Shown here: piece after piece, positions 229 to 35,021 of the stretch
Position numbering within the stretch: the first letter of the stretch is position 1
How the letters are laid out: every line of letters begins with the position of its first letter
Assembly: GCF_001194135.2 (NCBI RefSeq)
Contig: NC_068985.1
Span: 34,552,051 to 34,587,867 of the forward strand
Direction: 5' to 3'
DNA from: Octopus bimaculoides
Taxonomy: Eukaryota
DNA: 35,817 nt
Made by a program: the position numbers and the translations under genes
The notes under the pieces: model-generated
The model's input: the letters and a program-made list of their open reading frames with translations, nothing else
What the model was told of the DNA's origin: nothing
Database searches by the model: none

Positions 229-270
229 ACATGGATGGTACTTATGCCAATGTTTCACAGAAACCCAATG
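229..270 (+). CDS. 42-nt phase-1/phase-1 microexon, gene A; (D)MDGTYANVSQKPN
   Basis: Pyrimidine tract ttttttgatttcttgaAG ends at 228; GTAAGC donor at 271; open frame ac-atg-gat-ggt-act-tat-gcc-aat-gtt-tca-cag-aaa-ccc-aat-g; three paralogous copies downstream keep length, phase and Y-x-N. Confidence 0.7.
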
Positions 271-371
271 GTAAGCAATCCATTAATAAAATTACATTCA
301 TTAGAGCAAGAGATAGCAAAATCTTGGTTCATTCTTTCTTTGGGTAGTACAGGCAGTGTAAAATATGTCTT

Positions 372-598
372 TTATTTTTGTACTTGTTTCAGTGATTGGA
401 TTGCAGACGTGCTAAGGCACCACCTTGATGGGTTTAGTCCAACCAGTCCACCAAAGTATTTATTATTTTTAAGCTTTATACTCGTTTTGTTGTTGTGTTT
501 TGTCAAACTATTAAGTTCTGTGGACGTAAACAAACCAACATTGACTGTCATGTAGTGGTGGCTGAGTACAAAGACACACGCATACACACACACACACA

Positions 599-600
<2 letters not shown>
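372..600. mobile_element. Degenerate octopus-type SINE with CA/TA flank
   Basis: Collinear with the better-preserved copy at 30001-30215 (tacttgtttcagt...gcaccaccttt...ggacgtaaac). Confidence 0.7.
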
Positions 601-639
<39 letters not shown>

Positions 640-640
<1 letters not shown>

Positions 641-884
641 CAAAAAATAAGCAACACTGATTTCAAAGGTGATTGCAGTACCCACGTTTCATGCTACTCC
701 AATTTATTTAAGTAATGCGAGCATTACATTAAATGCAATATGAAGAGCAATCTTCAGCTGCAAGAAAATCTATTTTTATGTATTCTCTCTCCCACTTGGA
801 TTTGAAGTGTTGCCACATTTATAATATGTCTTTTCTACAGTAATTTTCTGCATTTTCGTACAGCTGAAGATTGCTCTTCATATT
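640..884. mobile_element. Penelope-like element remnant with inverted terminal segments, in a (TA)n tract
   Basis: Perfect 24-bp inverted repeat 737-760/861-884; hammerhead core motifs; homologous segment at 28158-28268; right part lost in the N gap 885-1081. Confidence 0.55.
673..763 (-). ncRNA. Type I hammerhead ribozyme motif
   Basis: Minus strand: TTGCAG (stem I), CTGAAGA (CUGANGA), about 60-nt stem II, GAAAC, GTGG loop, GTA (cleavage triplet), CTGCAA (stem I complement). Confidence 0.65.
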
Positions 885-1097
885 NNNNNNNNNNNNNNNN
901 NNNNNNNNNNNNNNNNNNNNNNNNNNNNNNNNNNNNNNNNNNNNNNNNNNNNNNNNNNNNNNNNNNNNNNNNNNNNNNNNNNNNNNNNNNNNNNNNNNNN
1001 NNNNNNNNNNNNNNNNNNNNNNNNNNNNNNNNNNNNNNNNNNNNNNNNNNNNNNNNNNNNNNNNNNNNNNNNNNNNNNNNNATATATATATATATAT

Positions 1098-1140
1098 AGA
1101 TGATAATGTTCCTTCAGTTTCAATCTACCAAATCCAATCA
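1098..1140 (-). mobile_element. Short 3' fragment of tRNA-derived SINE
   Basis: ccttcagtttcaatctaccaaatccaatca matches 31055-31085 of the full copy. Confidence 0.55.
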
Positions 1141-1959: not shown

Positions 1960-1992
1960 GTGCTTATATTAATGTTTCCCAGAAACCTGGCA
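1960..1992 (+). CDS. Paralogous microexon, probably shortened to 33 nt by acceptor shift; (G)AYINVSQKPG
   Basis: Ancestral acceptor position reads AA (1949-1950) and the 42-nt frame has TAA at 1956-1958, but a new AG at 1958-1959 gives an open 33-nt phase-1/phase-1 exon with GTAAGC donor at 1993. Confidence 0.45.
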
Positions 1993-2424: not shown

Positions 2425-2511
2425 CTAAGTATATATGCAATCCATTAATAAAATTACATTCATTAGAGCAAGAATGAACAAATATCTTGGTTCATTCATT
2501 CTTTGAGTAGT

Positions 2512-3411: not shown

Positions 3412-3982
3412 TTCTGTTTATATGATTTTATTTATTTAATTATTTTTCATATGTTGTGCTTTGTATTATATTGTATATGTATCTTCTGTGTTTTATAGAA
3501 TTTGACATTTATGAACACATCAAACTAGGAAGTAAATCCATAAATTTATTTTACTTTCTTACTGTCTTTTTTTGGTTTGTTTTCTTGAGGGTAGATAGTA
3601 TCAGAATAGTTGAAGTGTGATTAAGTTGTCCTTTCATGTTGTAAGTGTTGTTATTCTTGAATTTTACTACTGTGTCTGAAACCAAACTGTTTTATTGATA
3701 CTTATCTAGCTGTACTACACCATATACTTCGGTAGTGTAGTTGTATTGATTTTTCTACTTTCATTATATTTCCTTAATGAAGATGTTATATATCAAAAAG
3801 CATGTTTCAAATATGTTCTAAAAGAGTAACTGTGCATTCAAAAATATCCTAAACACTAAACTTTCTTACTTTCTTTTTAATGTATTCTAACCTACTCTAT
3901 CCATATGCAGAATAGGAGTGTACAAAACTATGTAAACTAAAACTTAAAACTATCTAAATTTATATTTCATTGGACTATATAT

Positions 3983-6930: not shown

Positions 6931-8104
6931 CATCAGGTTTAGGAGGCTTATAAAGGTCATGGACAATGTGTTTGCTTCCAGACTGAACAAGAATAAAATA
7001 CATACACATATACATGCATGAATACATCCAATCATCCATTCATTTGTGTAGTTTAATTCCCCTCTTCATATTAATACCTTGAAATACTGTTTTTAAATCC
7101 AAGCATTGTTGTGTATTGTTTTCATGGGATGTTAAATTCTGAATTGATATGTGTTGTAGCTTGAACTGAATATTAGATATTAATAACAGTCAAGGACACT
7201 ATCATTTGCTTAACATCCACAGTTCATTTACTGGTCACTAATTGGGATCAAGTGTTAAGTTTTAGGCTGTGAATGTATACAAAATGTATGGAAATTATAA
7301 ATAAAAATATGGTACCTGAAAATTTGTAACAGGCTCTCTTTTTGTGTTAAAAGCTTTATGTATCAGTGAGACCTTATACTAAAACTTTAGAATTTATTGC
7401 CCTAATCAATCGAAGCTTACATTATTGTAACTTATGGTAACTTTTACATGTTTTAAATGTAATTTCTGGGATCATTCAAATTTTTTCTTCCTTATGAAGA
7501 ATTCTGTGCTTATAAGATATCAATTTGTGCACCTAGTTTTTAAGTTCCAGTCATTCTAATATTTAAGCAAGCATGATCTAATATCTAATTATTTTTCTGC
7601 AAACATGCAATTATTTTCACAAACACCAAACATCAAATAATTGTTTAAGAGATCACAATCTTATGTAAGCATCTCATGTACATTTTTATTCTTTTATTTT
7701 TTAGGTTACCAGTGAAGGTCCATGCTTTTCAGATGAACAAGAACTTAGAACTTAGTATTATTGTATTTCACACCTAGAACTAAGTGGAATCTTGTGGACA
7801 ACCCATGTCAGTCTCCTTGTCATCATTTCATAGACACTTTTGCAAACATTGCAGACTTGAGTAAATATCTAATACTACCATAACATTATAGGTCTCTATT
7901 ATATGCTGTAACTGCATTATTTTTGTATTCACAGCATTGACAAATACTTGATTTATTTTTAATCTTTGTAAATATCTATCCATGACTAAACATTTGCATC
8001 AATGAAGTAAACTCAGTTAAATTTCTGTATCCCTTTCTTCCTATGAGTCATCATCAGCTAAACATACTATGCATATTTAACAACATTGCTGTGAATATTA
8101 CCAA

Positions 8105-11100
8105 TTTTTGGAATTATCATCATCATCATCATTGTCCATGTCTGTTGTCCATTCTGGCATGGGTTTGACGGTTTGACTGGGCTGGCACACTGGAAGGCTG
8201 CACCAGGATCTTGTCTGGTTTGGCATGGTTTTCTATGGCTGGATGCCCTTCCTAACATCAACCACTCTGAGAGTGTAATGGGTGCTCTTACGTGCCACTG
8301 GTATGGATGCTATTTGTGTGACACCGGTATCTTCCACAACTGCGATTTTGCTCAGCTTGATGCGTCTTCTTCTCAAGCACAACATAATGCCAAAGGTCTT
8401 GGTCATTGCTTCCGTGAGGCCCAATGCTCAAAAGAAGCTCAGCCACCTCGCTTCTGTGAAGCCCAACACTTGAAAGGAACTCAGCCACTTTGCCTCTATG
8501 CGGGCTAAGAGTTCAACCACTTTGCCTCCATGAGGCTCAATGCTCAAGAGGAATTCAGCCACCTCACCTCTGTGAGGCCCAACACTCAAAAGGAGCTCAG
8601 CCACTTTGCCTCCATCAGGCCCAACGCTCAAAAGCTACTCAGCCTCTTTGTCTCCATGGGGCTCAATGTTCAAAGATTGATTTTTTTATGTGCCACCAGC
8701 ACATGTGCACTTGGCTTGATGGGTCCTCTTCAGAAGACTACATTGCCAAAGGTCTCAATCACTTAGTCATTGCCTCTGGGAAGTTTAAAGTTCGAAGGTC
8801 ATGCTTCACTACTTTGTCCCATGTCTTCCTAGGTCTACCTCTACCACAGGTGCCTTCCGCAGTTAGAGATCAGCACTTCTTTACACAACTGTCCACATCC
8901 ATCCGCATCACATGACCATAGCAATGCAGTTGTCTCTCTTGCACACCACATCTGATTCCTCTTATACCTAACTTTTCTCTTAAGATGCTTACACTCTGCC
9001 GAACATGCACACTGATATTGCACATTCAGCGAAGCATACTGGCTTCATTTCTTTGATGCCTACACATGTCCTTGGCTGTCATAGTCCAGGTTTCACTGCC
9101 ATGGAGCATAACTGTTTACACACAGGCATCAAATCTGCCTTTCATTCTGAGGGAGAAGCCCTTTGTTGCCAGCATGGGTAGGAGCTCTCTGAACTTTGCC
9201 CAGCCTAATCTTATTCTCACAGTTACACTCATGGAACAACCACCTCTACTATTACCTGGTCGCCTAGATACGGGAAGCTATCTAGTACCTCTGGCTTGTT
9301 CCCCTTGGCAGTTGATGGAGTCTATTTTCTGCACATGTTCAGCATTTATTATGCCTGTGCACCTTCCACATACAAAAGTTAGTTTCTCTGTTTACCTTCC
9401 TTTGATGTTGCTGCACCTTTTGTGTGTCCAAAGCTTACACTGGGCGCATCTTATGAAGTTTCTACCTCCACCTTTTCTACAGATTGAGCAGGGCCATCTA
9501 CCTGAGGGGATTTGTGATTTGTCTACCTTCCAATTTACTATGACTTTGGTTTCTGCTAGGTTAACTCTAAGACCCTTTGAGTCTAGACTTTGTTTCCATA
9601 CCTGGAACTTCTTCTCTAGTTCTGGTAGTGATTCAGTTATAAGAGCAAGGTCATCAGCATAGAGGAGTTTCCAGCGGCAGCCTGTCTTGAATTCCTCCAT
9701 TATTGCCTGGAGGAATATGATGAACAAGAGTGGGCTGAGCACCAATCCTAGGTGAACCCCTACTTGTACCCTGAATTCTTTGCTGTACTCGTTGCCTACT
9801 CTCACCTTACTGGTCATGTCCCTGTACATGGCTTGCACAGCTCTCACCAACCACTCATCTATCCCTAGTTTCTACATCCCTAGTTTAAGCACCTCAGTGG
9901 TGATTCCTGATGGGCTGGGTGGTTTTCCCTGTCTTCATATCCTTAATTGCTTTATCTACCAGGGTACTGTCAATTTGGATAGCTGGTCCCTCAGTTGGGT
10001 CAACATTTGGCAGACTCTCCTTCTCCCATNNNNNNNNNNTAGCTGGTCCCTCAGTTGGGTCAACATTTGGCAGACTCTCCTTCTCCCATTCATTCTCCAT
10101 GTTCAGCAGTCTTTCATAATGACATCTCCAAGCCTCTTTCTTTGTAGACTCATTCACAACAAGTGCACCATCATCCATGCTGACACATTTCTCTCCTATG
10201 ACATCACAATTTTCTCTCACACACTGTCTTGCAATCTGAAATACTTCAGTTTACTGGTCTTCATGGTACTGAACATAGGTAAACTTCTTCTTTTCAGTTT
10301 CTTCCTTGGCTAGATATACTTGTCTCCTAGCTTCTCTTCTGGCTATCTGATACAGTTCCCTATAATGGCCCTGCCAACAGTATTGTTCCACCACTGCGTT
10401 ACCTTGGGTCTGGAAGGGACTTTGCACCTGCTACAGATTTGTTCAGTGGCACTCAGCAAGCTCTCACAGGAATTCCCAGTTGCCCTCTATGTCACAAGTT
10501 TGTAGCTGCTCCTCCCTCTCATCAAATTTCTCAATTTGGATGTCTCTAAATCTCTGACCATATGAATGGTCCTTATGCTTCCAGATCCTTCTTTTCCAGA
10601 TTGGTCTGCTTCTTGGCATCGTTCTGGCCAGGAGTCTAAAGTCGCTAATGACTAGTCTATGATGGGGATACATTCTTCACCAGGAAGAGTCTTTGCATTT
10701 CAGAGCAACCACGCATCCCACTGTCTGGTGAGAATGAAATCTATCTGGCTAGCAGAACCACCTGATTGTAAGGTTATCAGGTGACTGGCTGGCTTCCTGA
10801 AGTTGGTATTGCAGATCAAAAGGTTATTTGCATCACAGAACTCCAATAGCCTTGTTCCCTCTTCATTTCAGGAACCAATTCCATGACCCCCATGAACACT
10901 ATGGTAGATACCGGGCTGCTGTCTGACATGCCCGTTGAAATCATCAGCCATGAAGATGAAATCATTGTCACTTGTCTTGGAGGTATCCTGCAGATGAATA
11001 TCATAAAAGTGGTCCTTCTGTTTAATTTGGTAGGTCTGCTTGTGGGGCGTAGGTAGATATAATTGTAGCTATACTATTCTGAAAGACTAGCCTGAGCTTA

Positions 11101-11380
11101 AGTACCCCAGCACATACTCTAACTACGTCTATGACCTTATCCACTCATTTCTCAGCTAGGAGTATGCCCACACCATCGACTCCATCATTGTTACCTTCCC
11201 AGAAGATTTTAATACCTATGTGTCTTTCCTGTGAGGAACCTGGCTGAAGCCCCTCTCCACCTAACCTCTTAGATGCAACATACATCAACATGCCTCCTTT
11301 CAAGCATCTCTACAATCTCGTTAGATCTACATTTCAGTTTACCTACATTTACAGTGCCAACTGTGTACTCAAGGCCAAAT
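8105..11380 (-). mobile_element. Near full-length degraded RTE LINE (APE + RT + PHD-like finger + 3' UTR/tail)
   Basis: APE motifs GTVNVG..EVRWRG, GVGILL, IISTYAP, QIDFIL, HRLVISDF; RT motifs GVHLGLVLSPLLF and LLYADDL; C-terminal GRGRPRKTW; (GAT)n tail near 8115; several stops and frameshifts. Confidence 0.95.
8415..8670. repeat. About 42-bp minisatellite (about 6 units) in the RTE 3' UTR
   Basis: Unit similar to tgaggcccaacactcaaaaggagctcagccactttgcctcca, repeated with substitutions. Confidence 0.9.
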
Positions 11381-11459
11381 TTCCAGATTTACCCAAATCC
11401 TACAACTTCAAAACTTTTTGCATATAAATTGGATATAATCTTTACTTGTGTGTGAAAAA

Positions 11460-12400
11460 TTTTAATGGTACTCTCAAGACATAAAAAGTTATTATCATTC
11501 ATCTCAGAAGCATAAGTTTTTAATATTTCTCAAAAGCAAATGTGTCAGAAAATTGATTGTGTTTGGCTAGTTTGTTAAAAACAATCAATGCATCCAGCAT
11601 TGATGCCAAATCATGATCCAAGAGGTAATAATACAACATATATCATTTTCAGACTTAATATCACTTAAATATAACATTTCTGACTCATATTAATCCTGTT
11701 GTAACCAAGAGACTTTGTACCCTCCAGTCCACATCAAATTTTCACAAGTTCCAGAAACGTTTATACCATGATGAAATTCTGCACACAGTGTTATGTATTT
11801 TGCGTTAATAAAGTTTGCATGTCATCTTTTTCAAACATTTTGCTTTGTATGGTGTTGTTCTTCCAGAAATATTCTCATCAGTTAATTCTGAGCAGCCAAT
11901 ATTTTCCAAAACATGTTGGTGCAACATTGAAAAGAGCTCAAATTTTTGTCATATTTTGGTCTTCAGCAAAATGGCAATCAAGAGAAAACTACACCACATA
12001 GGAAGCTCATTTTGTTTTGAAACAACAATAGATAAATTTCAGTCACATATATCAGACAAATTTTCAGACCAGCTGTTTGTGAAACAAAGTCACAAGGAAA
12101 GAAAATTAGTGGGTTTGTTTGATTCAGTAACTTCTCATCACTTGACTATTTCAATTCAGTGCCCTGAAAGTTGGGCTGAAATTTTGAGCCAAGTATTGCA
12201 ATAACACTCACTTTCAGGCAGTATAAAAGCATTTTGTGGCCAGTGCTAGATCTTGAAATCATGTACAATCAATGGAAATTCAAAACTCTCCAGTTTCCAT
12301 GATCTGTTGAACAAAGTTCTGAAGTGCATTGTATTCTCAAACACTCATCGTGAGTATGAATTGCACACAATGGATAGAATTATTTCTCCAAAAAGTTAAC
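11460..12400 (-). mobile_element. Possible L1/Tx1-like ORF2 C-terminal remnant
   Basis: Broken frames give KMTCKLY..WYKRF..FDVDW, LYLSDIKSENDICC..WHQC and LAKH, loosely like the L1/Tx1 C-terminal Cys/His region; weak. Confidence 0.3.
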
Positions 12401-12559
12401 ACACCCATATCAAAAAGTTAACACACCCATAATATTATTTTTTGAATTTAATATTTATTATCCTAAGCGTTTTAGGGCCCCTTACAAACATACACCATTT
12501 TCCCATTCATCTATTTATTTATCTTATCCCTTATAATGGTCACAATAGTTGGTCTTTTG

Positions 12560-12835
12560 TTTTTAAATTTCAACTGACCAATTACATCAAATATTGGACT
12601 TTAGCATATCTCACTTTGGACAACAGGTAGAAGGCTTTAACCACCTACTAGTAAATAAATAAAAAAAAAATTACATTTAACCAATTAACACTTTATTATG
12701 ATTAATACTGTTAATAAAACAGGTTTTACTTGAAGAAAGGCTAAAAATTCCCCCTAAATTTGTTCAGAACTTGTATGAAGCAATTCCTCAGCTTATTAAA
12801 GCTATAACTGATACCAAAGGTGACCAACCCTAGCC
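12560..12835 (+). mobile_element. Tc1-like transposase C-terminal remnant
   Basis: VLLEERLKIPPKFVQNLYEAIPQLIKAITDTKGDQP* resembles the Tc1 end (EEW.KIP...VQNLYESIPRRI.AV..AKGGPT). Confidence 0.7.
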
Positions 12836-12954
12836 TGCTTACTTAGACAGTGAGATGGCTCAAAAGGTACTACAATGCAAGGAAATACATTGTGACCAAC
12901 TGTGTATACCAATACCTAATAATCTGGTCAATACTGTGATACAGTGATGAATAT

Positions 12955-13050
12955 TAATATATATATATATATATATATATATANNNNNNNNNNTGCTCCA
13001 GCATGGCAACACTCAAATGACTGAAACATGTAAAAGAGTAAAAGAATATA

Positions 13051-13118
<68 letters not shown>

Positions 13119-13145
13119 GAAAGAGAGAGAGAGAGACAGACAGGG
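12955..13145. repeat. Compound (TA)n/(TG)n/(CA)n/(GA)n microsatellites around a SINE-end fragment (12994-13047)
   Basis: Directly visible; tgctccagcatgg...gactgaaacatgtaaaagag is the reverse complement of about 30005-30050. Confidence 0.9.
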
Positions 13146-13495
13146 AGAGAAATAATGCCAATTAGAAACCTGTCACTTGGCTACAAATCTAAGTATTTTC
13201 TTAACTTATATAAAGTAAAAATAATCATTTGTAGTCAATTTTTGTAATGAGTTTTCCTGTTGTTTGATTAACTGAACTACTTACTCATTGAATTATATTG
13301 TATGTGACTGAGTATTCCACAGATATATGTATTCTTAGTATAATCTTCAGTTAGAATCAGTACACTGCAGAGAGTGACAAGGCTGACCTTTTGAATTACT
13401 GACTCAGCTTATTTGATGACCTTTGATGAACTTCATTACTATCTGGCTATACATTCTTCCATACATACAATACAAATGTGTGTATGTGCACTCAT

Positions 13496-13496
<1 letters not shown>

Positions 13497-13537
<41 letters not shown>
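13497..13537. repeat. (CA)n microsatellite
   Basis: Directly visible. Confidence 0.97.
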
Positions 13538-13540
<3 letters not shown>

Positions 13541-14384
13541 TATCCACATTGACTTTATTGTGGTACTATAATTTTCACAATGAAATTTTATAGAAGGTAT
13601 GAATTTCTCATTTTGTGTCATTGCTTCAATCAAATTATCTTGGAAATGTTGTAGCTGATATTTACAAAATAGTTTTTAAAATTCTATTTGCTTCCCCCAT
13701 AACTTTAGCTCTTAGACACATTATCAAAAAAAGAAAAAAACAAAAAAAAAAACAACTTAAATCTATTTTTCCTTTCTGAGATGATTTAGTAACCATAGAA
13801 GATAGATATTTGAGACTGAATTCCAGATATGAGGTACAGGATGTTAGTAAATGGAAATCATTTGAAAGCCCATCCTTTGTTTTTAGTTAGTGTGACAACT
13901 ATTAACAGAATTTAGTTTTCTGAAATGATTAAATAAGCGTAAAGTAATTGAAAATTGGTTGAGGTTATAAGTAGAGTGATGTGGGTTATCAGAATTTCCA
14001 TCAGTGACCTTGACTTATGTAGATCAATTGAAACCATTATAAATTATATAATTATTGATACATGGTTTAACAATTGTCACAACTTCAACGACAATAAATT
14101 TGAACTTATATACGAAAGATAATTTACTAGTTCTTGGAATGATCTCATGTTTCACTACCAAGAATATCCACAATGTCTTAATTCAGACATGCACATGAGC
14201 TGTTTAAGTTATTTATTTACATTCATATATTTTTGGACAAATCAATTTACTTTCACAATTACTAAGCACTCAGTGTTGGAGTGATTGATATGTTTGTTGT
14301 CTTGGTTTGGTAACCTTATTCAACCCTAACCTCTCAGTTTTTATGTCCTTATTATATGCTGTTATTAGTTGAAATATTCTTTTC

Positions 14385-14520
14385 TACCCTAGGCACAAGG
14401 CTCCAAATTTTTGGTTTAGGGACTAGTCAATTACATTGACCCCAGTGCATAACTGGCACTTAATTTAGCAACCCCAAAAAGGTGAAAGGCAAAGTTGATC
14501 CTAGTGGAATTTGATATTAG
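14385..14520 (-). mobile_element. Partial octopus-type tRNA-derived SINE
   Basis: ctaggcacaagg...gaccccagtg...ggtgaaaggcaaagttgatcctagtggaatttga resembles an octopus SINE core ending at a reverse B-box. Confidence 0.7.
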
Positions 14521-14583
14521 TTGAAACATTAGCATTAGGAAAGATATCTAACTTTGAAAACAGTTGCTGCAACAGTTCTTCCA

Positions 14584-14665
14584 AATTGGCTCATCTAATT
14601 GGCTCATCTAATTGGCTCATCTAATTGACTCATAATGTATGAGCCATCTAATTGGCTCATACATT
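14584..14665. repeat. 13-bp tandem repeat (aattggctcatct x4) plus 13-bp perfect hairpin
   Basis: Units start at 14584, 14597, 14610 and 14623; arms aatgtatgagcca (14634-14646) and tggctcatacatt (14653-14665). Confidence 0.92.
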
Positions 14666-15100
14666 AGATAAAAAATTTGAAGTAAAAACAAAACAAAAAC
14701 AAAAATAAATCATCAACTTTTAAAATATAAACCTCCAATAATTGTTAAGCTTTGTTTACAATATAGACAGTCAGTACATTTGGATCTGAATGTGTATGAT
14801 ACCTTGTAAAACCAAGATGTTTCAATATAAGCATGTGAAGTAAGATAAGCAAACACAGTGACAATCTTACATAGTGCATTCTCATTGCCAGCTGCTTTTC
14901 AAAGCACAAAACCCAGGACACACATTCCAAAAGATCGCACCATTTTACAAAAGAAATAAGGTTTTAATTTTCATTGGAAAGAACAATTCAAACAAAGACA
15001 TTACTCATATACATACACTCTTTTTAATTTTGTGTTTGTTATTTGTTATATAAGTACAGATGTACCAAAACAAAAGTATTTAAAAAATAAGACAGTATAT

Positions 15101-15185
15101 TAGGTACAGGTATGACAGTGTGGTAAGAAGCTTTCTTCCCAGCTATATGGTTCTGGGGTCAGTTCCACTGTGTGGCATTGGACAC
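15101..15185 (+). mobile_element. 5' head of tRNA-derived SINE
   Basis: Matches the reverse complement of about 31125-31210. Confidence 0.7.
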
Positions 15186-15608
15186 ATGAACAAATGAATA
15201 AATAAAAACAAAAATAGACGAACATGTATAAACAGAGGATATAGATAATACAGGCACTCCCCATACACACACATGCACTTACAAAACATAGACACACACA
15301 GAGGGATACGCATGCGTAGACACATACAATAGGAATACAGAATACAAAATGGCTGATCGTTAGCAAGGAGGAACACACATAAGAAAGAAGAAAGCAAAGG
15401 ACTACTGATGAGGTCACAGAAGTGTGACGAAAGAACTCTGGCTGAAATAGGATTAATGTAATGTATTGTAAAATAAAGCTGAAGCAAATTAACACCAAAT
15501 ATACAGTGCATGTGTTTTTATTGGCTAAACTGGCAATATGACCATCCCCAAATACAACAACATCTGTTTCAACACACGATTTCACATAAAAATCTTGCAA
15601 AGCAAATA

Positions 15609-15700
15609 TATTATTATTATTATTATTCAGGTCACTGCCTAGAATTGAACTCGGAATCTTGGGGTTAGTAGCCCACACTCTTAACCACTATGCCATATGC
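15609..15700 (-). mobile_element. Very short tRNA-derived SINE with (AAT)n tail
   Basis: Minus strand: A-box TGGCATAGTGGTTAAG, loop CTACTAA, B-box GAGTTCAATTC, then aataataataat. Confidence 0.7.
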
Positions 15701-19049: not shown

Positions 19050-21591
19050 AGAGCAATCATTTGCGTTCCTTAGATGATTGTGCAAATCTATCAATAATTG
19101 CTTCTGTATCCATTTCAGCTAACAGTTAATTTCCAATGGATAACAACATGTATGCTTCCAAGTTCTCCTCAAACAGTGAACTTCTTAACTTTGTCTTTAT
19201 GATCTTTAGCTTCACAAACACCCTCTCACATTGGACTTAGGTAACTGATAGTGTGCAGATGACTTTATAAAGTTCATAAGGGTTATCATATGCCTTGTCA
19301 TGAAGTCTGTTGGATGCCAGATGATGAGCAAGTGCTGCAAATTTTACAGTTGTTGCAACTGGAACCTATATTCTCACTGTCATTAATTAATAGCTTTAAT
19401 GCATCAAAGTTTGAAGCAAAAGAAGACAATTCCAATCATATTTGATCTTTGCTGATTTGTGGAAACAATTTAATAATATCTTCCAATGCTTCAACTTCAA
19501 GGCCCTTCTCTAGTTTTAAATTTAGCTGGATAAATCTTTATACAACTGTTTGTGCTGTACAAATTTTGATTCTAGTGACCTAACATTATTAGGTTAATCA
19601 CGTTTACTCAAAAATCAACTGGAGAATCTGAGAAACTCCCTTCATCATTAAAAAGCTCTACTGCCAATTGTTTCTTCCTCTGTCTCTTAGCTGGCAATGC
19701 TGTTTCCAAAGCATCAATTTCCAAAGTTTGATTTTCATCCATATTCATCTGTGAAAACTTGTCATTACATTTGTTTACAAATTCCAAAGCTTTACTGTGA
19801 ATGTTATGAAATGTTCTTGTCTGTTCCTTCAACTTTGTTGTAGCTGAATCTACTAAACCCCATGCAGTAAACATTTCTAATTAAAATTGTCTAATAGATA
19901 ACTTGATAACAGGGCTATAGTTTCAAATATATATACAAGTAAAAAAATGCTGTTAATATGGTTTCAAACATTATAAGACTTTGAAGTAAAACATTTGCTT
20001 CATGTTTTGTTTTGGTATCAAACGTATCTGAATCTTGTATTATTGATAAGCATGTCAATAGATTTACAAAAGTACTGATATTGACATCATGAAAACCTTT
20101 AAATATAGCTGTAGCTGCATTGGATTTTCCTGGCCATCTGGTCGGTTGTACCAATTAGCTTCAATTGTTTCATCTTTTTCTTTGTTCTAGATGTTTTCCA
20201 ACAACTATCCATACAGCCATTCTCTTATAAGATGCTTTCACAAAAGTTGCTAAATTCTGGAGCAAATTGAAAAAGGAAACTGCACATACACAACATCTTG
20301 TAGTTTCAATTATCACCAAATTCAAGATCTGAGCATAGCACCATATATGAACATGTTGATCTGCCACAGCAGCAATTTTACTTTGTAAACCATTATGCTG
20401 CCCGTGGTAACTTGCAGCACCATCTGTGCTGTCAGATAAACATTTTTGGGAGTCAATTCTAAGTTGTAACATTTCAGTTAATAGGTCAAAAAGTTTCTGT
20501 TCTGTACTATCATTACTTGGCACAATGAAAGTAGTTGCTTGCAGATAACACCTTTAAGCACATACTGAATAATAATGCTAAACTAATTGATGGATGAATT
20601 ATCCTGTGTTGAATCAACCTGAATGGAATAATATATTACTTGAGAAACTTCATGACCAGTTCTTTCTTGTATCATATTCTTCATGATTTGGATTAATAGT
20701 TGCTTTACTCAGGTATGTAATAAGTCCACTACGGCCTTTACTTTGAGCCTTTCTTTGTTTTTCTAAGTGATTGAGTTTTGGTCCAGATTGTTTTGCACTG
20801 CAGAAACGTGAGCGGCCATAATGATGTCCTAATTTGCCATCAACTTCAACGTAGCTAAAAAATTGCCATGATTCAGAATCTCATTATCCAAAGTGTGGGC
20901 CAATTTATTTCTGTGACCTCAAAAAAGGAGTGCATGCTTGCTTAACATCTTTATGATGTCTATAATCCTCATGACAATACTTCTCTGCTTCAATATTCTT
21001 CTTTCCTTTTGATTAATGATGCTGCCCCAAAATTTCCCATGGTGTCATCATTAACCACACTGATATATTGCTGAGCATTGCTGACATGTGTTGTTGATTT
21101 GATTTGTGTAAAGCCAAGTTCTGGCTAATATGCCTGTAGCCACTGAAACCACATACAAAGGGTGATAGATTACAAGTGTTGGGAGACTCAAAGACTATGG
21201 AGTATGAACAATATTAGCATCTATTTTCTTTATTATATGTTAGCCATTTTCCTGGGACTGAGTCATTCATAATTTTCCTCTCATATAAAGGAACTTCAAG
21301 TGGCTGAAATGAATGTTCAGCCAAAACCTTTTTCAGATTTGCTTGTAATGGACATTGGGAGATTCCAATAGTTGATCTTCCATATTTTTGTATAGGTTAA
21401 GTTACAGGACATGATTGAGGAACCAAGTCATTTATGCCTGAAATAATATCTGATTCCCTGTCACTAGTTGAAGCTTTGTGCTCAGATGTTGCAACTACAG
21501 GCAGTGCAGATACTGGAACAATGAAGCAAGAAGTAGTACTGGGACTGGGTTGGCTAGTAAAGGATGCACTTGTAATTTTCTCTACATTCAA
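19050..21591 (-). mobile_element. Pseudogenised hAT transposase (ZMYM1-like/DUF4371 type)
   Basis: IQVDSTQD, TDGAASYHGQHNGL, HIWCYAQILNLV, PTRW, and the dimerisation motif ICTLSVT.VQCERVFVKLKIIKTKLRSSLFEENLEAYMLLSI; many stops. TIRs not found. Confidence 0.9.
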
Positions 21592-24510: not shown

Positions 24511-24741
24511 TTTTTCTGAACTTTATTATTTCTCCTTTATACTGCCCTATCTTATATACTTGCTCTTCATGATCTCACCATGATAGTACTTGTTGTTAAG
24601 TGGGTTCATGTTTTTGTAAAGACAAGTTCCTATGATTAATGTCAAATTATTTTATACATTGTATTATTTTGCATCATGAACTTCATGCTCCTTATTTGTA
24701 AAAATCATTCCTATCAATATTTATCATTTTCTTTGTAGATA

Positions 24742-24796
24742 ATGGAATTCAGTCTGTTACATTTGAGATACGTCTTAATTGTACGATGTTTCTGTG
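24742..24796 (+). CDS. Signal-peptide-like exon of gene B, MEFSLLHLRYVLIVRCFC (exon 24739-24796)
   Basis: Acceptor tttatcattttctttgtAG ends at 24738; ATG at 24742; 18 mostly hydrophobic codons + G; GTAAGT donor at 24797; phase 1 joins exon 34740 in frame (G+TT = Val). Confidence 0.7.
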
Positions 24797-24919
24797 GTAA
24801 GTAACAGTATGTTTGTCAGATAAACATTCTTTTTTTCAGAATTTTTAATTGTTATAAATTTGTATCCACTGATACACTATAGAATTTAATCATTATTGTT
24901 GCTTAATACTAAGGCACCA

Positions 24920-25619: not shown

Positions 25620-26674
25620 CTTACTGATGGTACAAATATATAAAAAAAAGGATTTAGGAGACTTTAAAGTTAGAAGATAAAAATTGGACAAGCACGTTCA
25701 AACCAACAAATGTTCAACTGTTCACAGAAACTTTTACATTATTTACATTTGACGGATATATGTCCTCATCTTGTTTGTTGTTAACACGTTTCGGCTGATA
25801 TACCTTCCACCCGAAACGTTGTGTTAACAAGAAACAAGATGAGGACAAATAGCCGTCAAATGTAAATAATGTAAATAATGTACATAATTCCTCATCTCTT
25901 AAATATAGAACTGTGTTCACAGAAATTTCCATGTTTAATAGTTGGAAGAAGGCAGTCTAGGTCAAATGCTTCTTTTGGCTGTTTGCACACGTATACTTGG
26001 CTGGTGGTTGGAAATAAGGTAAAGGATGACTTGTCTGAGAAAATTACATTCTTCCATTGCTCTAGGAACCAATGGAAGAATAGGTTTTTACTCCACTCTA
26101 AATGCTTTGCAATGTTTTTTTTTGAAAGTAGTGGATTGCAGCCCTCCCATGAAATCCAGCTTTGTGCAGCTCCCGGTAAACAGTTTTTGCAGAAACTGGG
26201 TTTTCGAGATGGTCATTAAGCTCTGAAGTAATTTTGGGAGCTGTAATTTTGTGATCCTTTCTAACAATTTGTGTAAAAGTCCAACAGACCCTATCTGAAA
26301 GTTTTGGTTTACTTCTGGAGTTTTGTTTTGATGAGGAGGTTCTTCCCTCTTTCTCAAAGGCTGTCATTACTTTCAAGACAGTACTTCTTGAAGCATCAAA
26401 CATTTTGACTGTTTTCATTACACTAAGGCCTATCATACGATCACCAACAATTTGATGTCTTTGGAAGTCCGATAGATCTGTCATTTTAATGAATTTTAAT
26501 TACCTTTTTCTGATGATATCTGAAAAGAAACAGCAATTTTAGCAAAACATTAAGTAGCACTAATAATAAATTTAAAAAAAACATATAAACAAACAAGCTT
26601 TTGATAGTTTTATAGATATTTCGAAATTATGATAGTATGATGCTAGGTGTTTCCATTATTTTGTCGAACCCCTG
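25620..26674 (-). mobile_element. Tc1-family transposon, 5' TIR plus N-terminal half of the transposase
   Basis: TIR TA|CAGGGGTTCGACAAAATAATGGAAACACC at 26674-26647; MTDLSDFQRHQIVG...GRAAI, then frameshifted WKNVIFSDKSSFTLFPT...TIKHG; interrupted at 25925; left boundary uncertain. Confidence 0.9.
25731..25913. mobile_element. Fold-back Penelope-like insertion with 12-bp TSD, inside the Tc1 copy
   Basis: Arms 25734-25794 and 25811-25874 (3 mismatches + a 3-nt bulge); tgttcacagaaa at 25719-25730 and 25914-25925. Confidence 0.75.
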
Positions 26675-30254: not shown

Positions 30255-30263
<9 letters not shown>

Positions 30264-30960
30264 TTGTTTAAAAGAGTTCCAACACTGTCTGTTTTTTATG
30301 TTTTATTTATATTCCTGCAAAACCAATGTGGGATATCGAATATGGAATATACATNNNNNNNNNNNNNNNNNNNNNNNNNNNNNNNNNNNNNNNNNNNNNN
30401 NNNNNNNNNNNNNNNNNNNNNNNNNNNNNNNNNNNNNNNNNNNNNNNNNNNNNNNNNNNNNNNNNNNNNNNNNNNNNNNNNNNNNNNNNNNNNNNNNNNN
30501 NNNNNNNNNNNNNNNNNNNNNNNNNNNNNNNNNNNNNNNNNNNNNNNNNNNNNNNNNNNNNNNNNNNNNNNNNNNNNNNNNNNNNNNNNNNNNNNNNNNN
30601 NNNNNNNNNNNNNNNNNNNNNNNNNNNNNNNNNNNNNNNNNNNNNNNNNNNNNNNNNNNNNNNNNNNNNNNNNNNNNNNNNNNNNNNNNNNNNNNNNNNN
30701 NNNNNNNNNNNNNNNNNNNNNNNNNNNNNNNNNNNNNNNNNNNNNNNNNNNNNNNNNNNNNNNNNNNNNNNNNNNNNNNNNNNNNNNNNNNNNNNNNNNN
30801 NNNNNNNNNNNNNNNNNNNNNNNNNNNNNNNATTATATATTGTATATTATATTATATATTGTATATTCCATATTCTATATCCCACATTGGTTTTGCATCA
30901 ATATAAATAAACCATAAAAAACAGACAGTGTTGGAACTCTTTTAAACAAAATAATATATT
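30255..30960. mobile_element. Element with about 100-bp inverted termini around an N gap (MITE/fold-back-like)
   Basis: 30255-30353 is the near-exact reverse complement of 30860-30960; TA-rich flanks. Confidence 0.75.
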
Positions 30961-31047: not shown

Positions 31048-31210
31048 ACGGGCTTCTTTCAGTTTCCATCTACCAAATCCACTCACAAGGCTTTGGTTGG
31101 CCCAAGGCTATAGTAGAAGACACTTGCCCAAGGTGCCATGCAGTCAGACTGAACCTGGAACCATGTGGTTGTTTAGCAAGCTACCTACCACACAGCCACT
31201 CCTGCGCCTA
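31047..31210 (-). mobile_element. Full-length tRNA-derived SINE
   Basis: Minus strand: aggcgcaggagtggctgtgtggtag...ggttcagtctgactgc...gtgagtggatttggtagatggaaactgaaagaagcccgtc, then a (TA)n tail. Confidence 0.85.
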
Positions 31211-31748
31211 TTCCTCATAGTTCTAATTTATTATTGTTCTTCCATTAGAAAAATTACACCTTTGAATGACAAGGTAGCTGTTAAACAATATGTAGTGAAT
31301 TTCATGCAGGCATAGTGTGGATTCAATCCTTGATCACCAAATTTTACATAACAATTCAACAGCACTTTTCTTACGGTAAAACAATAGTTTTTCTGTGAGT
31401 AACAGCAGTTACATTTACTAGACGCCTTTGCTAAGCCAGAATAATGTCTTCGCCACTTGACCCTTCTAACCTCTTCTAGGCCACCAATAGCTAGAATAGA
31501 GATAACAGATTGTAGTGAAATCTTTTGTTATCAATAATATGTTTATCTTCTAACTAGTTTTAGATAGTTATAAATACTAGAATTTGACAAGGTGAAATTA
31601 GTTAGTGAACGGACAACTAGAGTCATAGTTACAAGCAGGCAGCCACTAATGACAAACGGCCAGAGGGAGACAGAAGGTTATAATCAGCCAACTATGAGAC
31701 ACAACCCTCCTCGACTCTATAACTTTCACTAACTCACTTTCTTTTCTC

Positions 31749-32030
31749 TGTAACATTACCATCTCTCTCTATATATGCTACTATGAGATCGTGTACACAT
31801 CCTGGCTGAAATTAAGTCTTTTTACTTTGCATACTTTTCCATTTACTAATTATACATACCAACCCGTTGTGGTTTTGGATATATGCAAAGTAATGGTAAA
31901 TAAATATTTCTTTACAATCTCAATCACTGTTCTTCTTCCACTTGCATATCTGCAACAATACCTGATACAATCGCTTACTTCCGACTCCACCATATATCAT
32001 AACAACAACAACTGTTACAATTGGTGACCC
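31749..32030 (+). mobile_element. Possible Gypsy-type LTR (31749-32019) with primer-binding site
   Basis: Termini TGTAACA...TGTTACA, internal AATAAA, then AT + TGGTGACCC (PBS-like); no internal ORF seen before the gap. Confidence 0.35.
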
Positions 32031-32608
32031 TCAACTGCAACGAAGAACTAACCATTACAATTGGTGACAACTCCAATGTTCCATTCTATTGTTTATCAGA
32101 TTAATCTTTGCTGTTACAAATATGTGCATNNNNNNNNNNNNNNNNNNNNNNNNNNNNNNNNNNNNNNNNNNNNNNNNNNNNNNNNNNNNNNNNNNNNNNN
32201 NNNNNNNNNNNNNNNNNNNNNNNNNNNNNNNNNNNNNNNNNNNNNNNNNNNNNNNNNNNNNNNNNNNNNNNNNNNNNNNNNNNNNNNNNNNNNNNNNNNN
32301 NNNNNNNNNNNNNNNNNNNNNNNNNNNNNNNNNNNNNNNNNNNNNNNNNNNNNNNNNNNNNNNNNNNNNNNNNNNNNNNNNNNNNNNNNNNNNNNNNNNN
32401 NNNNNNNNNNNNNNNNNNNNNNNNNNNNNNNNNNNNNNNNNNNNNNNNNNNNNNNNNNNNNNNNNNNNNNNNNNNNNNNNNNNNNNNNNNNNNNNNNNNN
32501 NNNNNNNNNNNNNNNNNNNNNNNNNNNNNNNNNNNNNNNNNNNNNNNNNNNNNNNNNNNNNNNNNNNNNNNNNNNNNNNNNNNNNNNNNNNNNNNNNNNN
32601 NNNNNNNN

Positions 32609-34190
32609 GTAGGAGAGAGAATAGTGATGTAGTAGGAGAGAAATGTATTCGCATGGATGATGGTACGCTTGCTCTAAATGAGGCTGCAAAGAAAGAGGTC
32701 TGGAGAAGCCACTACGATAGATTGCTTAATAAAGAGAATGAATGGGAGAAAGAGAGTCTGTCGTATGTCGACCCAACAAAGGGACCAGTTATGCTAATTG
32801 ACACTACATTGGTAGATAAAGCAATCAAGAGTATGAAAACAGGAAAGCCCCAGGCCCATCAGGAATCACTGCAGAGATGCTCAAAATATCNNNNNNNNNN
32901 AGAAGAATGGTTAGTGAGAGCTGTGCGAGCCATGTACAGAGACGCTGTCATTAAGGTGAGGGTTGGTAACAAGTACAGTGAAGAATTTTGGGTAGAGGTA
33001 GGAGTCCACCAAAGTTCAGTCCTCAGCCCCCTCCTATTTATCATAGTCTTCCAGGCAATAACAGAGGAATTCAAGACAGGATGCCCCTGGGAGCTCCTCT
33101 ATGCTGATGACCTTGCACTAATTGCTGAGTCACTATCAGAATTAGAGGAGAAGTTTCAGGTATGGAAGCAAGGACTAGAATCGAAGGGCCTTAGAGTCAA
33201 CCTAGCTAAAACCAAAGTCCTAATAAGTAGGAAGGTAGACAAAACACAAACCCCTTCAGGTAGATGACCCTGCTCGATCTGTAGAAAAGGCGTAGGTAGA
33301 AACTCTATAAGATGTACCCAGTGCAAGCTATGGACACATAAGAGGTGCAGCAATATCGAAGGAAGGTTAACTGGGAAGATAGTTTTTGTATGTGGCAGAT
33401 GTTCAGGAGCAATAAACTGAAAATGTGCAGAAAACAACTTTGGCCACATTCCAGGGAGAAAAACTAGACTTAGTTGATAGCTTCCTCTATCTAGGTGACT
33501 AAGTTATTAGTGGGGGAGTGTGCACTGAAAGTGTAGCTGCTAGAATAAGAATAGCCTGGGCAAAGTTCAGAGAGCTCTTACCTCTGCTGGTGACAAAGGG
33601 TCTCTCACTCAGAGTAAAAGGCAGACTGTATGACGCATATGTACGAACAGCCATGCTACATGGCAGTGAAACATGGGCCGTTACTGCTGAGGACATGCGT
33701 AGGCTCACAAGGAATGAAGCCAGTATGCTCCTATGGATGTGTAATGTCAGTGTGCATACTAGACAGAGTGCAAGTACCTTGAGAGAAAAGTTGAACCTAA
33801 GAAGCATCAGTTGCGGTGTGCAAGAGATACGATTGCACTGGTACTGTCATGTGGTAAGAATGGATGAGGATAGCTGTGTGAAAAAGTGCCACACCCTAGC
33901 AGTTGAGGGAACCTGTTGAAGAGGTAGGCCCAGGAATACCTGGGATGAGGTGGTGAGGCACAACCTTTGAACATTGGGCCTCACTGAGGTAATGACTTCT
34001 GACCGAGACCTTTGGAAATATGCTGTGCGTGAGAAGACCCGGCAAGCCAAGTGAGACCTAAATCCAAGGCCTCTGCCAGGGGTGTAGCCAGCCCACTTAT
34101 GTGTACCTTCCTTCATTGGACACTAAACTCCGCTTGCGAAGACCTGTTGAGGCAAGTGAAATCGAACTAAATTCGACGACTGGTACCCAT
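32609..34190 (+). mobile_element. RTE LINE RT/C-terminal region and start of 3' UTR
   Basis: GVHQSSVLSPLLF, ELLYADDL, PHD-like Cys array 33271-33402, WAKFRELLPLL, MLHGSETW, GRPRNTW; 5' part in a gap; a few stops and frameshifts. Confidence 0.95.
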
Positions 34191-34229
34191 GCACGCATAC
34201 ACACACACACACAAATACACACATATAGT

Positions 34230-34706
34230 TTAGTCCACTGTGAAATTTTAAACCCAAACTAAATGATAACAAAGGAGATCTACTGTGTCAGTGCTAGAAG
34301 AAAAATGACCATCTTTGGTTTCAAGATGAAAGTTGTTCTTCCATCAGGATAATGCTTGGCTGTATACAATGAGCATGATATTCCAAAGGCTGGAACAGTT
34401 TGAATGGGAAACGATGCCCCACCCACCATATTCACAGGACATTGCCCCAGCTGATTGTCTTCAAAATCATTTGGACGGAAAAAATATGAATTCTGTAGAC
34501 GAGGTCAGAACAGTACTGGAGGAGTATTTTTCATCATGGCCAAGTGAATTTTGGACAAGGGGCCTTGCAAGTCTACCAGATAGATGAAAGAGCATTGTAG
34601 AAAATGAAGGAAAGTATATTTTAGATTAAAAAAAAAACTTTGTTTATCTTAATTTTGAAAAATAAAAGAAGTATAAAAACTGCATTATTTATGGGATGAC
34701 CCAATA
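34230..34706 (+). mobile_element. Mariner transposon 3' half with TIR
   Basis: FHQDNA, WETMPHPPYSQDIAP (YSPDLAP motif), FWTRGLASLPDR; TIR aaactgcattatttatgggatgacccaata followed by TA. Confidence 0.9.
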
Positions 34707-34739
34707 TATATATGTGCTTTATATTTTCCTTTCCTTCAG

Positions 34740-35021
34740 TTTCTCTTAAACCAATTGATGGTGGAATAAAATTTGTCAGACAAAATCAACCAGAAACTCT
34801 TGAATGTCCTCTTGCAAAACAAAAAGTTGAAAACTGGCAAATTGGATTGAAAGAAATTAGTAGTCTTCATTGGTTACCTGTTAAAACTAATGAAATTGAA
34901 GCAAATGTGATTCCTGGGAAAGACAACATCTTAAACATCACTCTTCTTTCAAGTAATGATGTAACATTACTTTGTAAGAGCACTGACAAGTGGATAAAAT
35001 TTCAAGCAGTACCAATGTATA
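34740..35021 (+). CDS. Ig-like domain exon of gene B (282 nt, phase 1/1)
   Basis: Acceptor ttttcctttccttcAG and donor GTAAGT at 35022; 94 open codons with TLEC...W (+10)...LNIT...NDVTLLC, two Cys 55 residues apart; N-glycosylation sequon NIT. Confidence 0.8.

Follow-up and report, generated by a model that had tools for sequence, protein, structure and literature searches.

The window and its two partial genes

The stretch of DNA analysed here in its entirety (the window) comprises 35,817 nucleotides of the Octopus bimaculoides genome (RefSeq contig NC_068985.1, positions 34,552,051 to 34,587,867 of the forward strand) and carries parts of two genes lying on the same strand, namely the tail-like 3' end of gene A and, downstream of it, the 5' end of gene B, which encodes a leader and an immunoglobulin (Ig)-like domain. 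This arrangement, proposed in a first-pass annotation, is borne out by exons with splice sites, by matches to position-specific scoring matrices (PSSMs) of the family and by a 100% match to an annotated protein, P0001. The window probably runs from the 3' part of one member into the 5' part of its neighbour in a tandem, Octopus-restricted family of predicted type I receptors of the Ig superfamily (IgSF).

Exons and identity of gene B

All exons described below are on the + strand, and a slash marks the border between exon and intron. The leader exon of gene B, encoding the signal peptide, spans positions 24739-24796 with an ATG at 24742; it reads (I)MEFSLLHLRYVLIVRCFC and ends in phase 1 (TGT G/gtaagt). 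The exon of the first domain (D1) lies at 34740-35021, where 282 nt bordered by ttccttcag/ and TAT A/gtaagt encode 94 amino acids (aa) in phase 1-1 with the Cys...Trp...Cys pattern. Together, the products of these two exons are identical (100%; phmmer E = 6e-55) to residues 1-112 of P0001, i.e. UniRef A0A0L8GVD7, a 571-aa 'Ig-like domain-containing protein' of O. bimaculoides, in which the window leader provides residues 1-18 and the D1 exon residues 19-112. P0001 is an older stand-alone model that stops inside the last Ig domain, without a transmembrane segment.

In the 2022 RefSeq annotation, the leader, D1, D2 and D3 of gene B form the N-terminus of isoforms X1, X3, X4 and X5 of LOC106879981 (P0049-P0052), so that gene B is counted there as an alternative 5' end of this locus and not as a separate gene. 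These isoforms have about eight Ig domains, a transmembrane helix and then a tail of 14-aa acidic Y-x-N modules, including DIDDVYVNVSRKPD, DMDGVYVNVSKNSG and DLDDVYVNVSKKPD, the C-terminus of X3 being GYQ-stop. The possibility raised at the outset that gene B might end without such a tail is not borne out by the RefSeq models, in which four isoforms join its 5' exons to the Y-x-N tail of LOC106879981. In RefSeq, the first coding exon of gene B is found at 20683-20715 (MIWINSCFTQ, donor CAG/gtatgt); it is spliced to position 24739, corresponds to residues 1-11 of P0009, recurs in P0049, P0051 and P0052 and is included in three of the four isoforms (X1, X3 and X5). Still further upstream, a candidate 5' non-coding exon at about 18418-18478, the 5' edge of which is uncertain, ends with the donor TCA/gtaagt; its stretch 18427-18477 matches residues 13-29 of P0007, a model from O. 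vulgaris, with 88% identity. In the latter, a predicted model only, the counterpart of this exon is spliced to the leader exon.

Compared with the paralogs, the window leader is 50-83% identical, the leader exon together with about 130 nt of flank on each side 87-92%, and D1 42-57% according to an exhaustive HMMER search.

Tail exons of gene A

A PSSM derived from the 14-aa modules of the family gave only four tail-type matches in the window, all on the + strand, with scores of 17.8-36.7 bits. The first of these 42-nt type-A microexons (229-270, phase 1-1, 36.7 bits) reads (D)MDGTYANVSQKPN between a ttcttgaag/ acceptor and a /gtaagc donor, and shows 75% identity to MDGVYANVSQKPNA of P0007. The copy at 1951-1992 (31.5 bits), which reads (N)M-stop-GAYINVSQKPG and shows 80% identity to NMDGAYINYSQKPGT of P0006, is dead, as it has lost the AG of its acceptor (aaaa/) and carries an in-frame TAA. 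The third copy (2383-2424, 26.7 bits), reading (D)MNGAYVNFTKKPD, keeps its acceptor but has CT instead of GT at the donor, and the fourth (2858-2899, 17.8 bits), reading (D)LDGAYVNVWKCLG, retains both AG and GT with a C-terminal half diverged from the S-x-K-P consensus. Each segment is in phase 1-1 (x/AC ATG ... AAT G/), and the four copies are tandemly duplicated units with the 42-nt segment and the positions of the AG and GT sites at the same offset; two of the four (229-270 and 2858-2899) are splice-competent and the other two defective. No other tail-type module was found by the 14-aa PSSM on either strand of the rest of the window or of 164 kb of paralogous loci; what else it matched were two ectodomain stretches inadvertently included among the training sequences and, in the paralogous locus L002, a minus-strand site at 13 bits.

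Besides type A, a remnant of the second kind of tail module (type B, YxxM/L) is present at 1641-1687; these 47 nt read (S)YAEASGSKNLELIPP, end in phase 1 with CCA CCA A/gtaagt and give the single window match (1642-1686, 33.6 bits) of a PSSM for the second half of the 20-aa module. Fifteen of 17 residues are identical to the C-terminus of the O. vulgaris P0007, SYAEASGSKYFELIPPS. This exon starts in phase 2 and can consequently follow directly neither microexon 1 nor any phase-1 exon; in addition, an in-frame TGA stands immediately upstream and the second Tyr of the module is replaced by Asn. A likeness between its acceptor region and that of the Y-x-N exons suggests that it arose by recombination. 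A 40-nt candidate partner at about 1300-1339 (ending CCCA/gtaagt) was rejected, as entry in phase 1 leads to an in-frame TAG and the alternative acceptor to the wrong phase. Either the in-frame partner of 1641-1687 may be hidden in the assembly gap 885-1081, the only gap of relevance in this respect, or the exon may be dead.

The terminal coding micro-exon of gene A is assigned to 7705-7715 (ttattttttag/GT TAC CAG TGA), which reads xYQ-stop and, after any phase-1 module, gives G/S-Y-Q-stop; a 3' untranslated region likely follows 7715. The terminal-exon pattern has three exact matches in the window, of which only this one is preceded by a polypyrimidine tract and AG. Joining 229-270 to 7705 would yield ...KPNGYQ-stop, and joining 1641-1687 to 7705 would yield ...ELIPPSYQ-stop, as in P0007. 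Altogether, the gene A array is partly decayed, since only two of its four Y-x-N exons are not dead and the exon of type B is crippled, and gene A may be an unannotated or a decaying paralog. LOC106869178 was considered as gene A and discarded, its C-terminal modules (IEGDGYYSTLNTPD and others) being absent from the window.

Two further observations concern this region. An intronic element of about 80 nt (CAATCCATTAATAAAATTACATTCATTAGAGCAAGA...AAAATCTTGGTTCATTCTTTCTTTGAG) lies just downstream of the Y-x-N microexons (271-350, 1993-2072 and 2433-2513, + strand) and is 88-92% identical among units 1-3, against 67-71% for the microexons themselves; between units 1 and 2, the exon is 69% identical and the flanks 90-92%, the exon being significantly less conserved (p = 0.001). 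Possible explanations are that the element controls splicing, that the flanks underwent gene conversion, or that the exon has been diversifying. Also, a 33-nt segment at 3499-3531 (+, phase 1-1, borders tatag/ and /gtaaat) reads (E)FDIYEHIKLG with a YxxI motif, faintly like the ...SLNDIYENNNQ module of LOC106869178, and could be either a tail cassette or a chance occurrence.

Tail modules as cassette exons

Across the family, the tail is built from a small set of modules. The consensus of the 42-nt exons is D-[MLIV]-[DN]-[DG]-x-Y-x-N-[VI]-S-x-K-P-x (14 aa) and that of the 60-nt exons ...E-x-S-E-P-x-Y-[LIV]-x-M-K-x-P (20 aa), the other parts being 42-nt YATI exons near the membrane and a terminal exon with 8 coding nt giving xYQ-stop. 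C-termini in GYQ, DYQ or SYQ are found in 12 proteins, including RefSeq isoforms of O. bimaculoides, and since the variable residue before YQ corresponds to a phase-1 split codon, the terminal exon can be written as (G/A)T TAC CAR stop.

The idea of 42-nt microexons, which the first-pass annotation proposed to look for downstream of 35021, finds independent confirmation in RefSeq, where isoforms differ by exactly one 14-aa module. Isoforms X1 and X3 of LOC106874069 differ by the absence of exactly NMDGAYVNISKKPG, the next residue changing from D to N as expected, because the first base of the phase-1 split codon then comes from a different upstream exon; X1 and X5 of the same locus differ by the absence of exactly TVEEQYAEISEPKYLEMKQQ (60 nt), X1 and X4 by that of DVEDVYATISSEPS, and X1 and X5 of LOC106879981 by that of DIDDVYDSVSREPE. 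The 3' ends of isoforms alternate as well, between ...KKPG-DYQ-stop and a donor read-through (GKISQNFWDDLIYV-stop). Such differences of exactly one 14- or 20-aa module between RefSeq isoforms show that the modules are cassette exons, and the microexons of the window agree with the cassette modules of the annotated proteins in length, phase and motif. As all cassettes are in phase 1-1, their duplication, loss or skipping leaves the reading frame unbroken.

The Y-x-N sites of the window are YANV, YVNF and YVNV, plus the dead YINV. With Gly at -2 (G-T-Y-A-N-V, G-A-Y-V-N-F, G-A-Y-V-N-V) and no paired YxxL, these modules are neither inhibitory (ITIMs) nor activation motifs (ITAMs) of the immunoreceptor tyrosine-based kind, and paralog tails have 0-3 ITIM-like matches. 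The pattern applied was [SIVL]-x-Y-x-x-[IVL] for the ITIM and YxxL/I-x(6-8)-YxxL/I for the ITAM. The initial view of Y-x-N modules taking the place of ITIM and ITAM thus holds for the window modules but is too narrow for the family, since Y-x-N modules are not the only ones in the tails: 20-aa YxxM/YxxL modules and, close to the membrane, YATI modules alternate with them, and the end of one subfamily is ITIM/switch motif (ITSM)-like. The tail of P0006 contains 30 Tyr in 430 aa, with 9 YxN and 10 YxxM, 27 of the 30 having an acidic residue at most four positions upstream; in the tails of eight family members, Asp or Glu is found at most four residues upstream of 90 of 113 Tyr. Src homology 2 (SH2) domains have established specificities, pY-x-N for Grb2 and pY-x-x-M for the p85 subunit of PI3K. 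In their acidic, disordered and cytoplasmic context, the Y-x-N cores of the tail are inferred to be putative Grb2-SH2 docking sites.

The ITIM/ITSM-like subfamily is represented by P0017 of O. vulgaris and P0055 of O. sinensis (LOC115212114), in which the tail contains LYAKVNKP repeats, four in P0017 and six in P0055 together with one FYANVNTP variant. Their C-terminus, NYAELEF...(about 20 aa)...TIYADLILDS, is like a tandem of ITIM and ITSM, and this subfamily may be an inhibitory, functionally opposed counterpart of the Y-x-N/YxxM tails.

Architecture and distribution of the family

The family architecture comprises one or several 5' exons, a signal-peptide exon, D1, about 5-8 conserved Ig domains, one transmembrane helix and a tail. 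The leader follows the pattern ME[FV]xLL...C[FVL]C with a phase-1 splice to the D1 exon, as in gene B, the downstream domains match Pfam Ig_3, I-set, C2-set_2 and Ig_2, and the transmembrane helix is followed by a basic stop-transfer stretch (YKFHKIR...) and then by the long acidic Tyr-rich tail. Near-complete models from about eight distinct loci in three Octopus species (O. bimaculoides, O. sinensis and O. vulgaris) join a leader and D1 of gene-B type to a tail of gene-A type. Such pairing of head and tail, which cannot be seen in the window itself, supports the proposal that A and B are neighbouring paralogs of an expanding family.

The family had initially been called a cephalopod one; its existence is confirmed, but it was detected in Octopus only. 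An exhaustive HMMER search with D1 returned eight proteins, all from Octopus, a word-indexed protein search with D1 gave no match, and no member was detected outside the genus by searches that were limited to D1 or word-indexed and that distant relatives could escape. O. bimaculoides has at least eight loci, and all six with a recorded contig are on one 127-Mb chromosome, CM046605.1. LOC128247863 lies there at 34.42-34.49 Mb and LOC128247864 at 34.98-35.03 Mb, with LOC106874055 immediately after the latter; LOC106869178, LOC106879981, LOC106874069 and LOC106874055 share this chromosome, and their protein accessions run consecutively. Corresponding sets exist in O. sinensis and O. vulgaris, in either species on a single chromosome. 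The paralogous loci L001-L003, of which L001 and L002 lie at 34.42-35.03 Mb of CM046605.1, contain no tail modules and do not overlap with the window, their best matches being 75-92% identical. In the literature that could be searched, no description of such an octopus family was found, nor any mention of the six family locus names looked for.

Several annotation models of the family are aberrant. Some are fused to open reading frames of transposable elements (TEs), as seen in P0020 with its Pif1 helicase and in P0009 (XP_014777803.1) with a C-terminus like that of a transposase, and others are truncated inside TEs (the set being P0009, P0020, P0002 and P0016). The leader exon of LOC128247864 is found at 3856-4137 of L002 (CM046605.1), 87% identical to positions 24556-24839 of the window and about 6 kb upstream of the annotated start, and the first 85 residues of its RefSeq model, P0004, are unlike the family; the annotated 5' end of this model is probably wrong.

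Fold and variability of domain 1

The AlphaFold (AF2) model of D1, built from a 10-sequence family alignment, is an 8-strand beta-sandwich with a predicted local distance difference test (pLDDT) of 87.4 and a predicted template modelling score (pTM) of 0.75. Its Foldseek neighbours in the PDB are mostly Ig-like, several being V-type, and include the V-alpha domain of the T-cell receptor (TCR), TREM-1, CD300lf, CAR D1, FGFR and obscurin. C23 (B strand), W33 (C strand) and C79 (F strand) are invariant or nearly so in the family. On this predicted model, D1 is accepted as a divergent Ig-like domain, with no set assigned.

Mean pairwise identity is 0.41-0.55 in D1 against 0.64-0.80 in the rest of the ectodomain. 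The ratio of nonsynonymous to synonymous divergence (dN/dS) amounts to 2.05, 1.76 and 1.64 in comparisons of the D1 exons of gene B, L001 and L002, against 0.46 for D2, and the nonsynonymous and synonymous counts of D1 and D2 differ (p = 0.028). With dS of 0.13-0.21 in D1, divergence is comparable to that of the intron just downstream, which is 74-80% identical (20-26% different). By these measures of sequence divergence, D1 is the hypervariable, fast-evolving tip of the putative receptor.

Spacer, transposons and assembly gaps

The window is AT-rich and contains many microsatellites and nine N-gaps. From the last microexon to the leader, about 21 kb had been described as mostly TE debris between the two genes. 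Fragments of TEs are indeed present, i.e. of a long interspersed nuclear element (LINE) reverse transcriptase, of Tc1 and of Helitron (Pif1), but gene A reaching at least 7715 and gene B having upstream 5' exons, the true intergenic spacer is shorter, about 10-13 kb. Mostly made of transposon debris, it extends over 7716-18417, with a LINE reverse-transcriptase fragment at 9395-9871 (-; RVT_1, E = 4e-12). A tandem repeat at 8408-8674 (+), adjoining the LINE fragment, has a period of 42 nt (about six copies, 75-79% matches); as a Y-x-N array it was discarded, its sequence being unrelated and its period equal to the microexon length by coincidence. In the leader-to-D1 intron, a Tc1-type transposase N-terminus lies at 26101-26499 (-; HTH_Tnp_Tc3_2, E = 6e-9), and a segment at 34330-34584 (+), about 150 nt upstream of the D1 exon and without Pfam match, was read as a mariner-like transposase C-terminus. 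Rfam and tRNA scans of the window found nothing.

The nine gaps include those at 885-1081 and 10030-10039 as well as three missing from the program-made list, at 30355-30831, 32130-32608 and 32891-32900. All nine fall in introns or in the spacer, none comes closer than 205 nt to an exon, and neither gene A nor gene B has a reading frame that crosses one. The 10-N gap at 10030-10039, within the LINE reverse-transcriptase fragment, is flanked by a perfect 50-nt direct duplication (9981-10088), which indicates an unmerged contig overlap without missing sequence. On either side of the 477-N gap (30355-30831) stand inverted repeats of 100 nt that are 96% identical (30255-30960), which may point to a fold-back element or to a palindrome created by the assembly. 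The leader-to-D1 intron, 9.9 kb in gene B and 3 kb in the paralog L001, spans five gaps, and its junction is confirmed by annotated proteins and by L001.

Interpretation and rival explanations

Under the preferred reading, a tandem family of receptors with a variable tip and a modular tail, D1 would bind a variable ligand, and clustering driven by this ligand would lead a Src-type kinase to phosphorylate the acid-flanked tyrosines. The pY-x-N sites could then recruit the SH2 domain of Grb2/Drk (towards Ras-MAPK) and the pY-x-x-M sites the p85 of PI3K, in a multivalent manner, while signal strength would be tuned by how many cassettes there are and of which kinds, as determined by duplication and splicing. 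Architecture, cassette exons and motif content are shown by the sequences, whereas this mechanism is drawn from the established SH2 specificities. The likeness to immune receptors is architectural only.

Several points weigh against this reading. The Ig exons of gene A lie outside the window, upstream of position 1, and a comparison with 57 family proteins, drawn from two annotation releases, found its tail peptides in none of them; a chimeric query made of P0001 and gene A peptides likewise retrieved no protein that carries these peptides. The terminal-exon pattern is not enriched in itself (26 matches with at most one mismatch for 29 expected), so that the weight of 7705-7715 comes from its context and not from pattern frequency. 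Several gene models span 140-780 kb, with up to 780 kb in O. sinensis and O. vulgaris, and could each be a fusion of paralogs that lie next to one another; ranges of this size are those of P0006, P0007, P0016, P0017, P0013 and P0052. The link from head to tail accordingly rests on predicted models, though many independent ones agree. As for D1, taken alone it has no Pfam family even at E <= 10 and retrieves nothing useful in a PDB sequence search, its Foldseek matches are weak (E 2e-3 to 2e-2, template modelling scores 0.45-0.56) with bacterial beta-sandwiches among the top ones, and each single D1 comparison of dN/dS is non-significant (Fisher p = 0.10-0.18).

Regarding the window itself, the reading of the 42-nt units as a non-coding tandem repeat or transposon fragment, in which Y-x-N would be coincidental, can appeal to tandem duplicates that include the flanks and to flanks at least as conserved as the presumed exon; it is effectively refuted, as the same module, with the same frame and phase-1 borders, occurs as a cassette exon in annotated tails of three species, as no tail-type module exists elsewhere in the 200 kb scanned on both strands, and as a B-type module and the family terminal exon lie alongside. 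That gene A is the decaying tail of a dead paralog, or a set of spare cassettes left by tandem duplication and no longer spliced into mRNA, is a much more serious proposition, which we hold to be somewhat short of an even chance. One copy without AG and with a stop, another without GT donor, the upstream stop, phase mismatch and Tyr to Asn change of the B-type exon, the absence of the peptides from those 57 proteins, the absence of any annotated gene in the 10 kb upstream of LOC106879981, and the lower conservation of the exon (69%) than of the flanks (90-92%) between units 1 and 2 all speak for it; yet in two copies the splice sites are perfect and the frame is open, a terminal exon that is intact and has a strong acceptor stands downstream with an in-frame path from 229-270 to 7705, and 42-nt exons are notoriously under-annotated. 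At the other end of the window, gene B might be only one of several alternative 5' units (leader and D1-D3) of LOC106879981, spliced over more than 100 kb onto shared exons. Isoforms X1, X3, X4 and X5 are identical from D4 onward to X2, whose leader and D1-D3 are its own, the gene extends over 258 kb, and O. sinensis and O. vulgaris offer models of similarly great length; however, P0001 runs from D3 into D4-D7 of gene B's own, different from those of LOC106879981, which argues that gene B has, or had, its own body, and gene predictors often fuse tandem paralogs, the isoforms being predicted models. On balance, this possibility appears doubtful, though worth keeping in mind. Pushed further, it would make the locus one of variable heads and a constant body, where upstream units (5' exon, signal peptide, D1-D3) are spliced over at least 100 kb onto a shared D4-D9, transmembrane helix and tail; in the predicted RefSeq models, two alternative 5' units (that of gene B and that of X2) do sit on an identical D4-to-tail sequence within the 258-kb locus. 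We regard this as an unlikely arrangement, but if true, a single locus would produce a receptor repertoire with different tips and a tunable common tail, a protocadherin- or UGT1-like strategy in a mollusc immune-type IgSF family.

Concerning function, the same architecture could serve cell adhesion or neuronal or tissue self-recognition, after the manner of Dscam, IgLONs, sidekicks or contactins, instead of immune-type sensing, D1 then being a homophilic or heterophilic recognition code and the tail feeding Ras/PI3K for growth or guidance. The ectodomain profile matches contactin-1, Dscam, NEGR1 and titin besides the carcinoembryonic antigen CEA (E = 3e-7 to 7e-4), nothing in the sequence is specifically immune, and cephalopods are known for expanded families of neuronal recognition proteins, e.g. 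the protocadherins. This role is nonetheless rather unlikely in our estimation, given that a dN/dS above 1 confined to the tip domain, restriction to a genus, frequent pseudogenisation and TE-fused models are more typical of host-pathogen or allorecognition receptors, and that an ITIM/ITSM-like subfamily exists.

The tandem family of tunable receptors, if so understood, matters in several respects. Adaptive immunity is not known in cephalopods, and very few of their receptors for immunity or self-recognition have been described. What would be new here is a genus-restricted, tandemly expanding IgSF family with a tip domain at dN/dS > 1, along with a modular signalling tail in which each frame-neutral microexon carries one putative SH2-docking motif and cassette skipping is annotated. 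Its members are candidate variable recognition receptors in octopus, and offer a natural example of exon duplication and alternative splicing that may tune the number and type of phosphotyrosine docking sites. Besides, annotation problems are exposed, namely missing microexons, TE-fused models and possibly fused paralogs, which need fixing before expression studies.

Comparison with known systems

Against solved structures, the ectodomain profile finds CEA as best match (1e07, E = 3e-7), followed by contactin, titin, Dscam and NEGR1, and the similarity of the family to known proteins is generic to the IgSF. In functional terms, the nearest analogues are receptors of the CEACAM, CD22 and PECAM type, YxN scaffolds of the LAT type and the FcoR/fester families of Botryllus. 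CEACAM/CEA proteins resemble the octopus family in their string of Ig domains, their fast-evolving N-terminal domain and their tandem multigene cluster with pseudogenes, on chromosome 19 in the case of CEACAM; the inclusion of tail tyrosine motifs in CEACAM also depends on a small alternatively spliced exon. They differ in that the CEACAM tails are short with ITIM or ITAM-like motifs and no Y-x-N/YxxM cassette arrays, and in that the octopus D1 keeps its Cys pair; there is no orthology. PECAM-1 and CD22 (Siglec-2) likewise combine six or seven Ig domains with one transmembrane helix and a multi-tyrosine tail, which in PECAM-1 is pieced together from successive short exons subject to alternative splicing. 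Both are, however, single-copy, with ITIM/ITSM dominant and neither a repeated 42-nt cassette nor an xYQ terminal exon. In CD22, a Grb2-binding tyrosine is found besides the ITIMs (PMC5302901).

At the level of motifs, the Ig tail tyrosine (ITT) motif YxNM of membrane IgG and IgE (mIgG/mIgE) recruits Grb2 (PMC4263166). ITT and the octopus modules share the Tyr-x-Asn core, which is read by the SH2 domain of Grb2. Other Grb2-docking motifs are YMNM of CD28, YINM of DAP10 and the YxN arrays of LAT and NTAL, and YVNV, present in the window, is what we take to be a LAT-type site. LAT-type adaptors resemble the octopus tails by their several YxN sites in an acidic, disordered tail. Yet LAT and NTAL have almost no ectodomain, whereas in octopus the scaffold would be fused to a ligand-binding receptor and the sites are individually exon-encoded, the homology being one of motif only; a single octopus polypeptide would thereby unite what in vertebrates is divided over a receptor and a LAT-type scaffold.

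Among invertebrates, the FcoR/fester (FF) receptors of Botryllus are comparable as lineage-restricted, highly diverse Ig-domain receptors with several tail tyrosine motifs, and alternative splicing of their cytoplasmic part changes the motif content (PMC12582321). FcoRs contain ITIM, hemITAM and 'core' motifs, the YxNM type being reported absent (PMC12582321). They belong to a different phylum and possess three Ig-like domains plus Sushi, with no homology shown to the octopus family. Finally, KIR/LILR of the leukocyte receptor complex and NITR/NILT of fish resemble the octopus family as tandem IgSF clusters with variable ligand-binding domains and paralog-specific tails, but their activating members rely on separate ITAM adaptors via a charged transmembrane residue, whereas the octopus transmembrane segments considered here are without such a charge and are followed by docking tails of their own.

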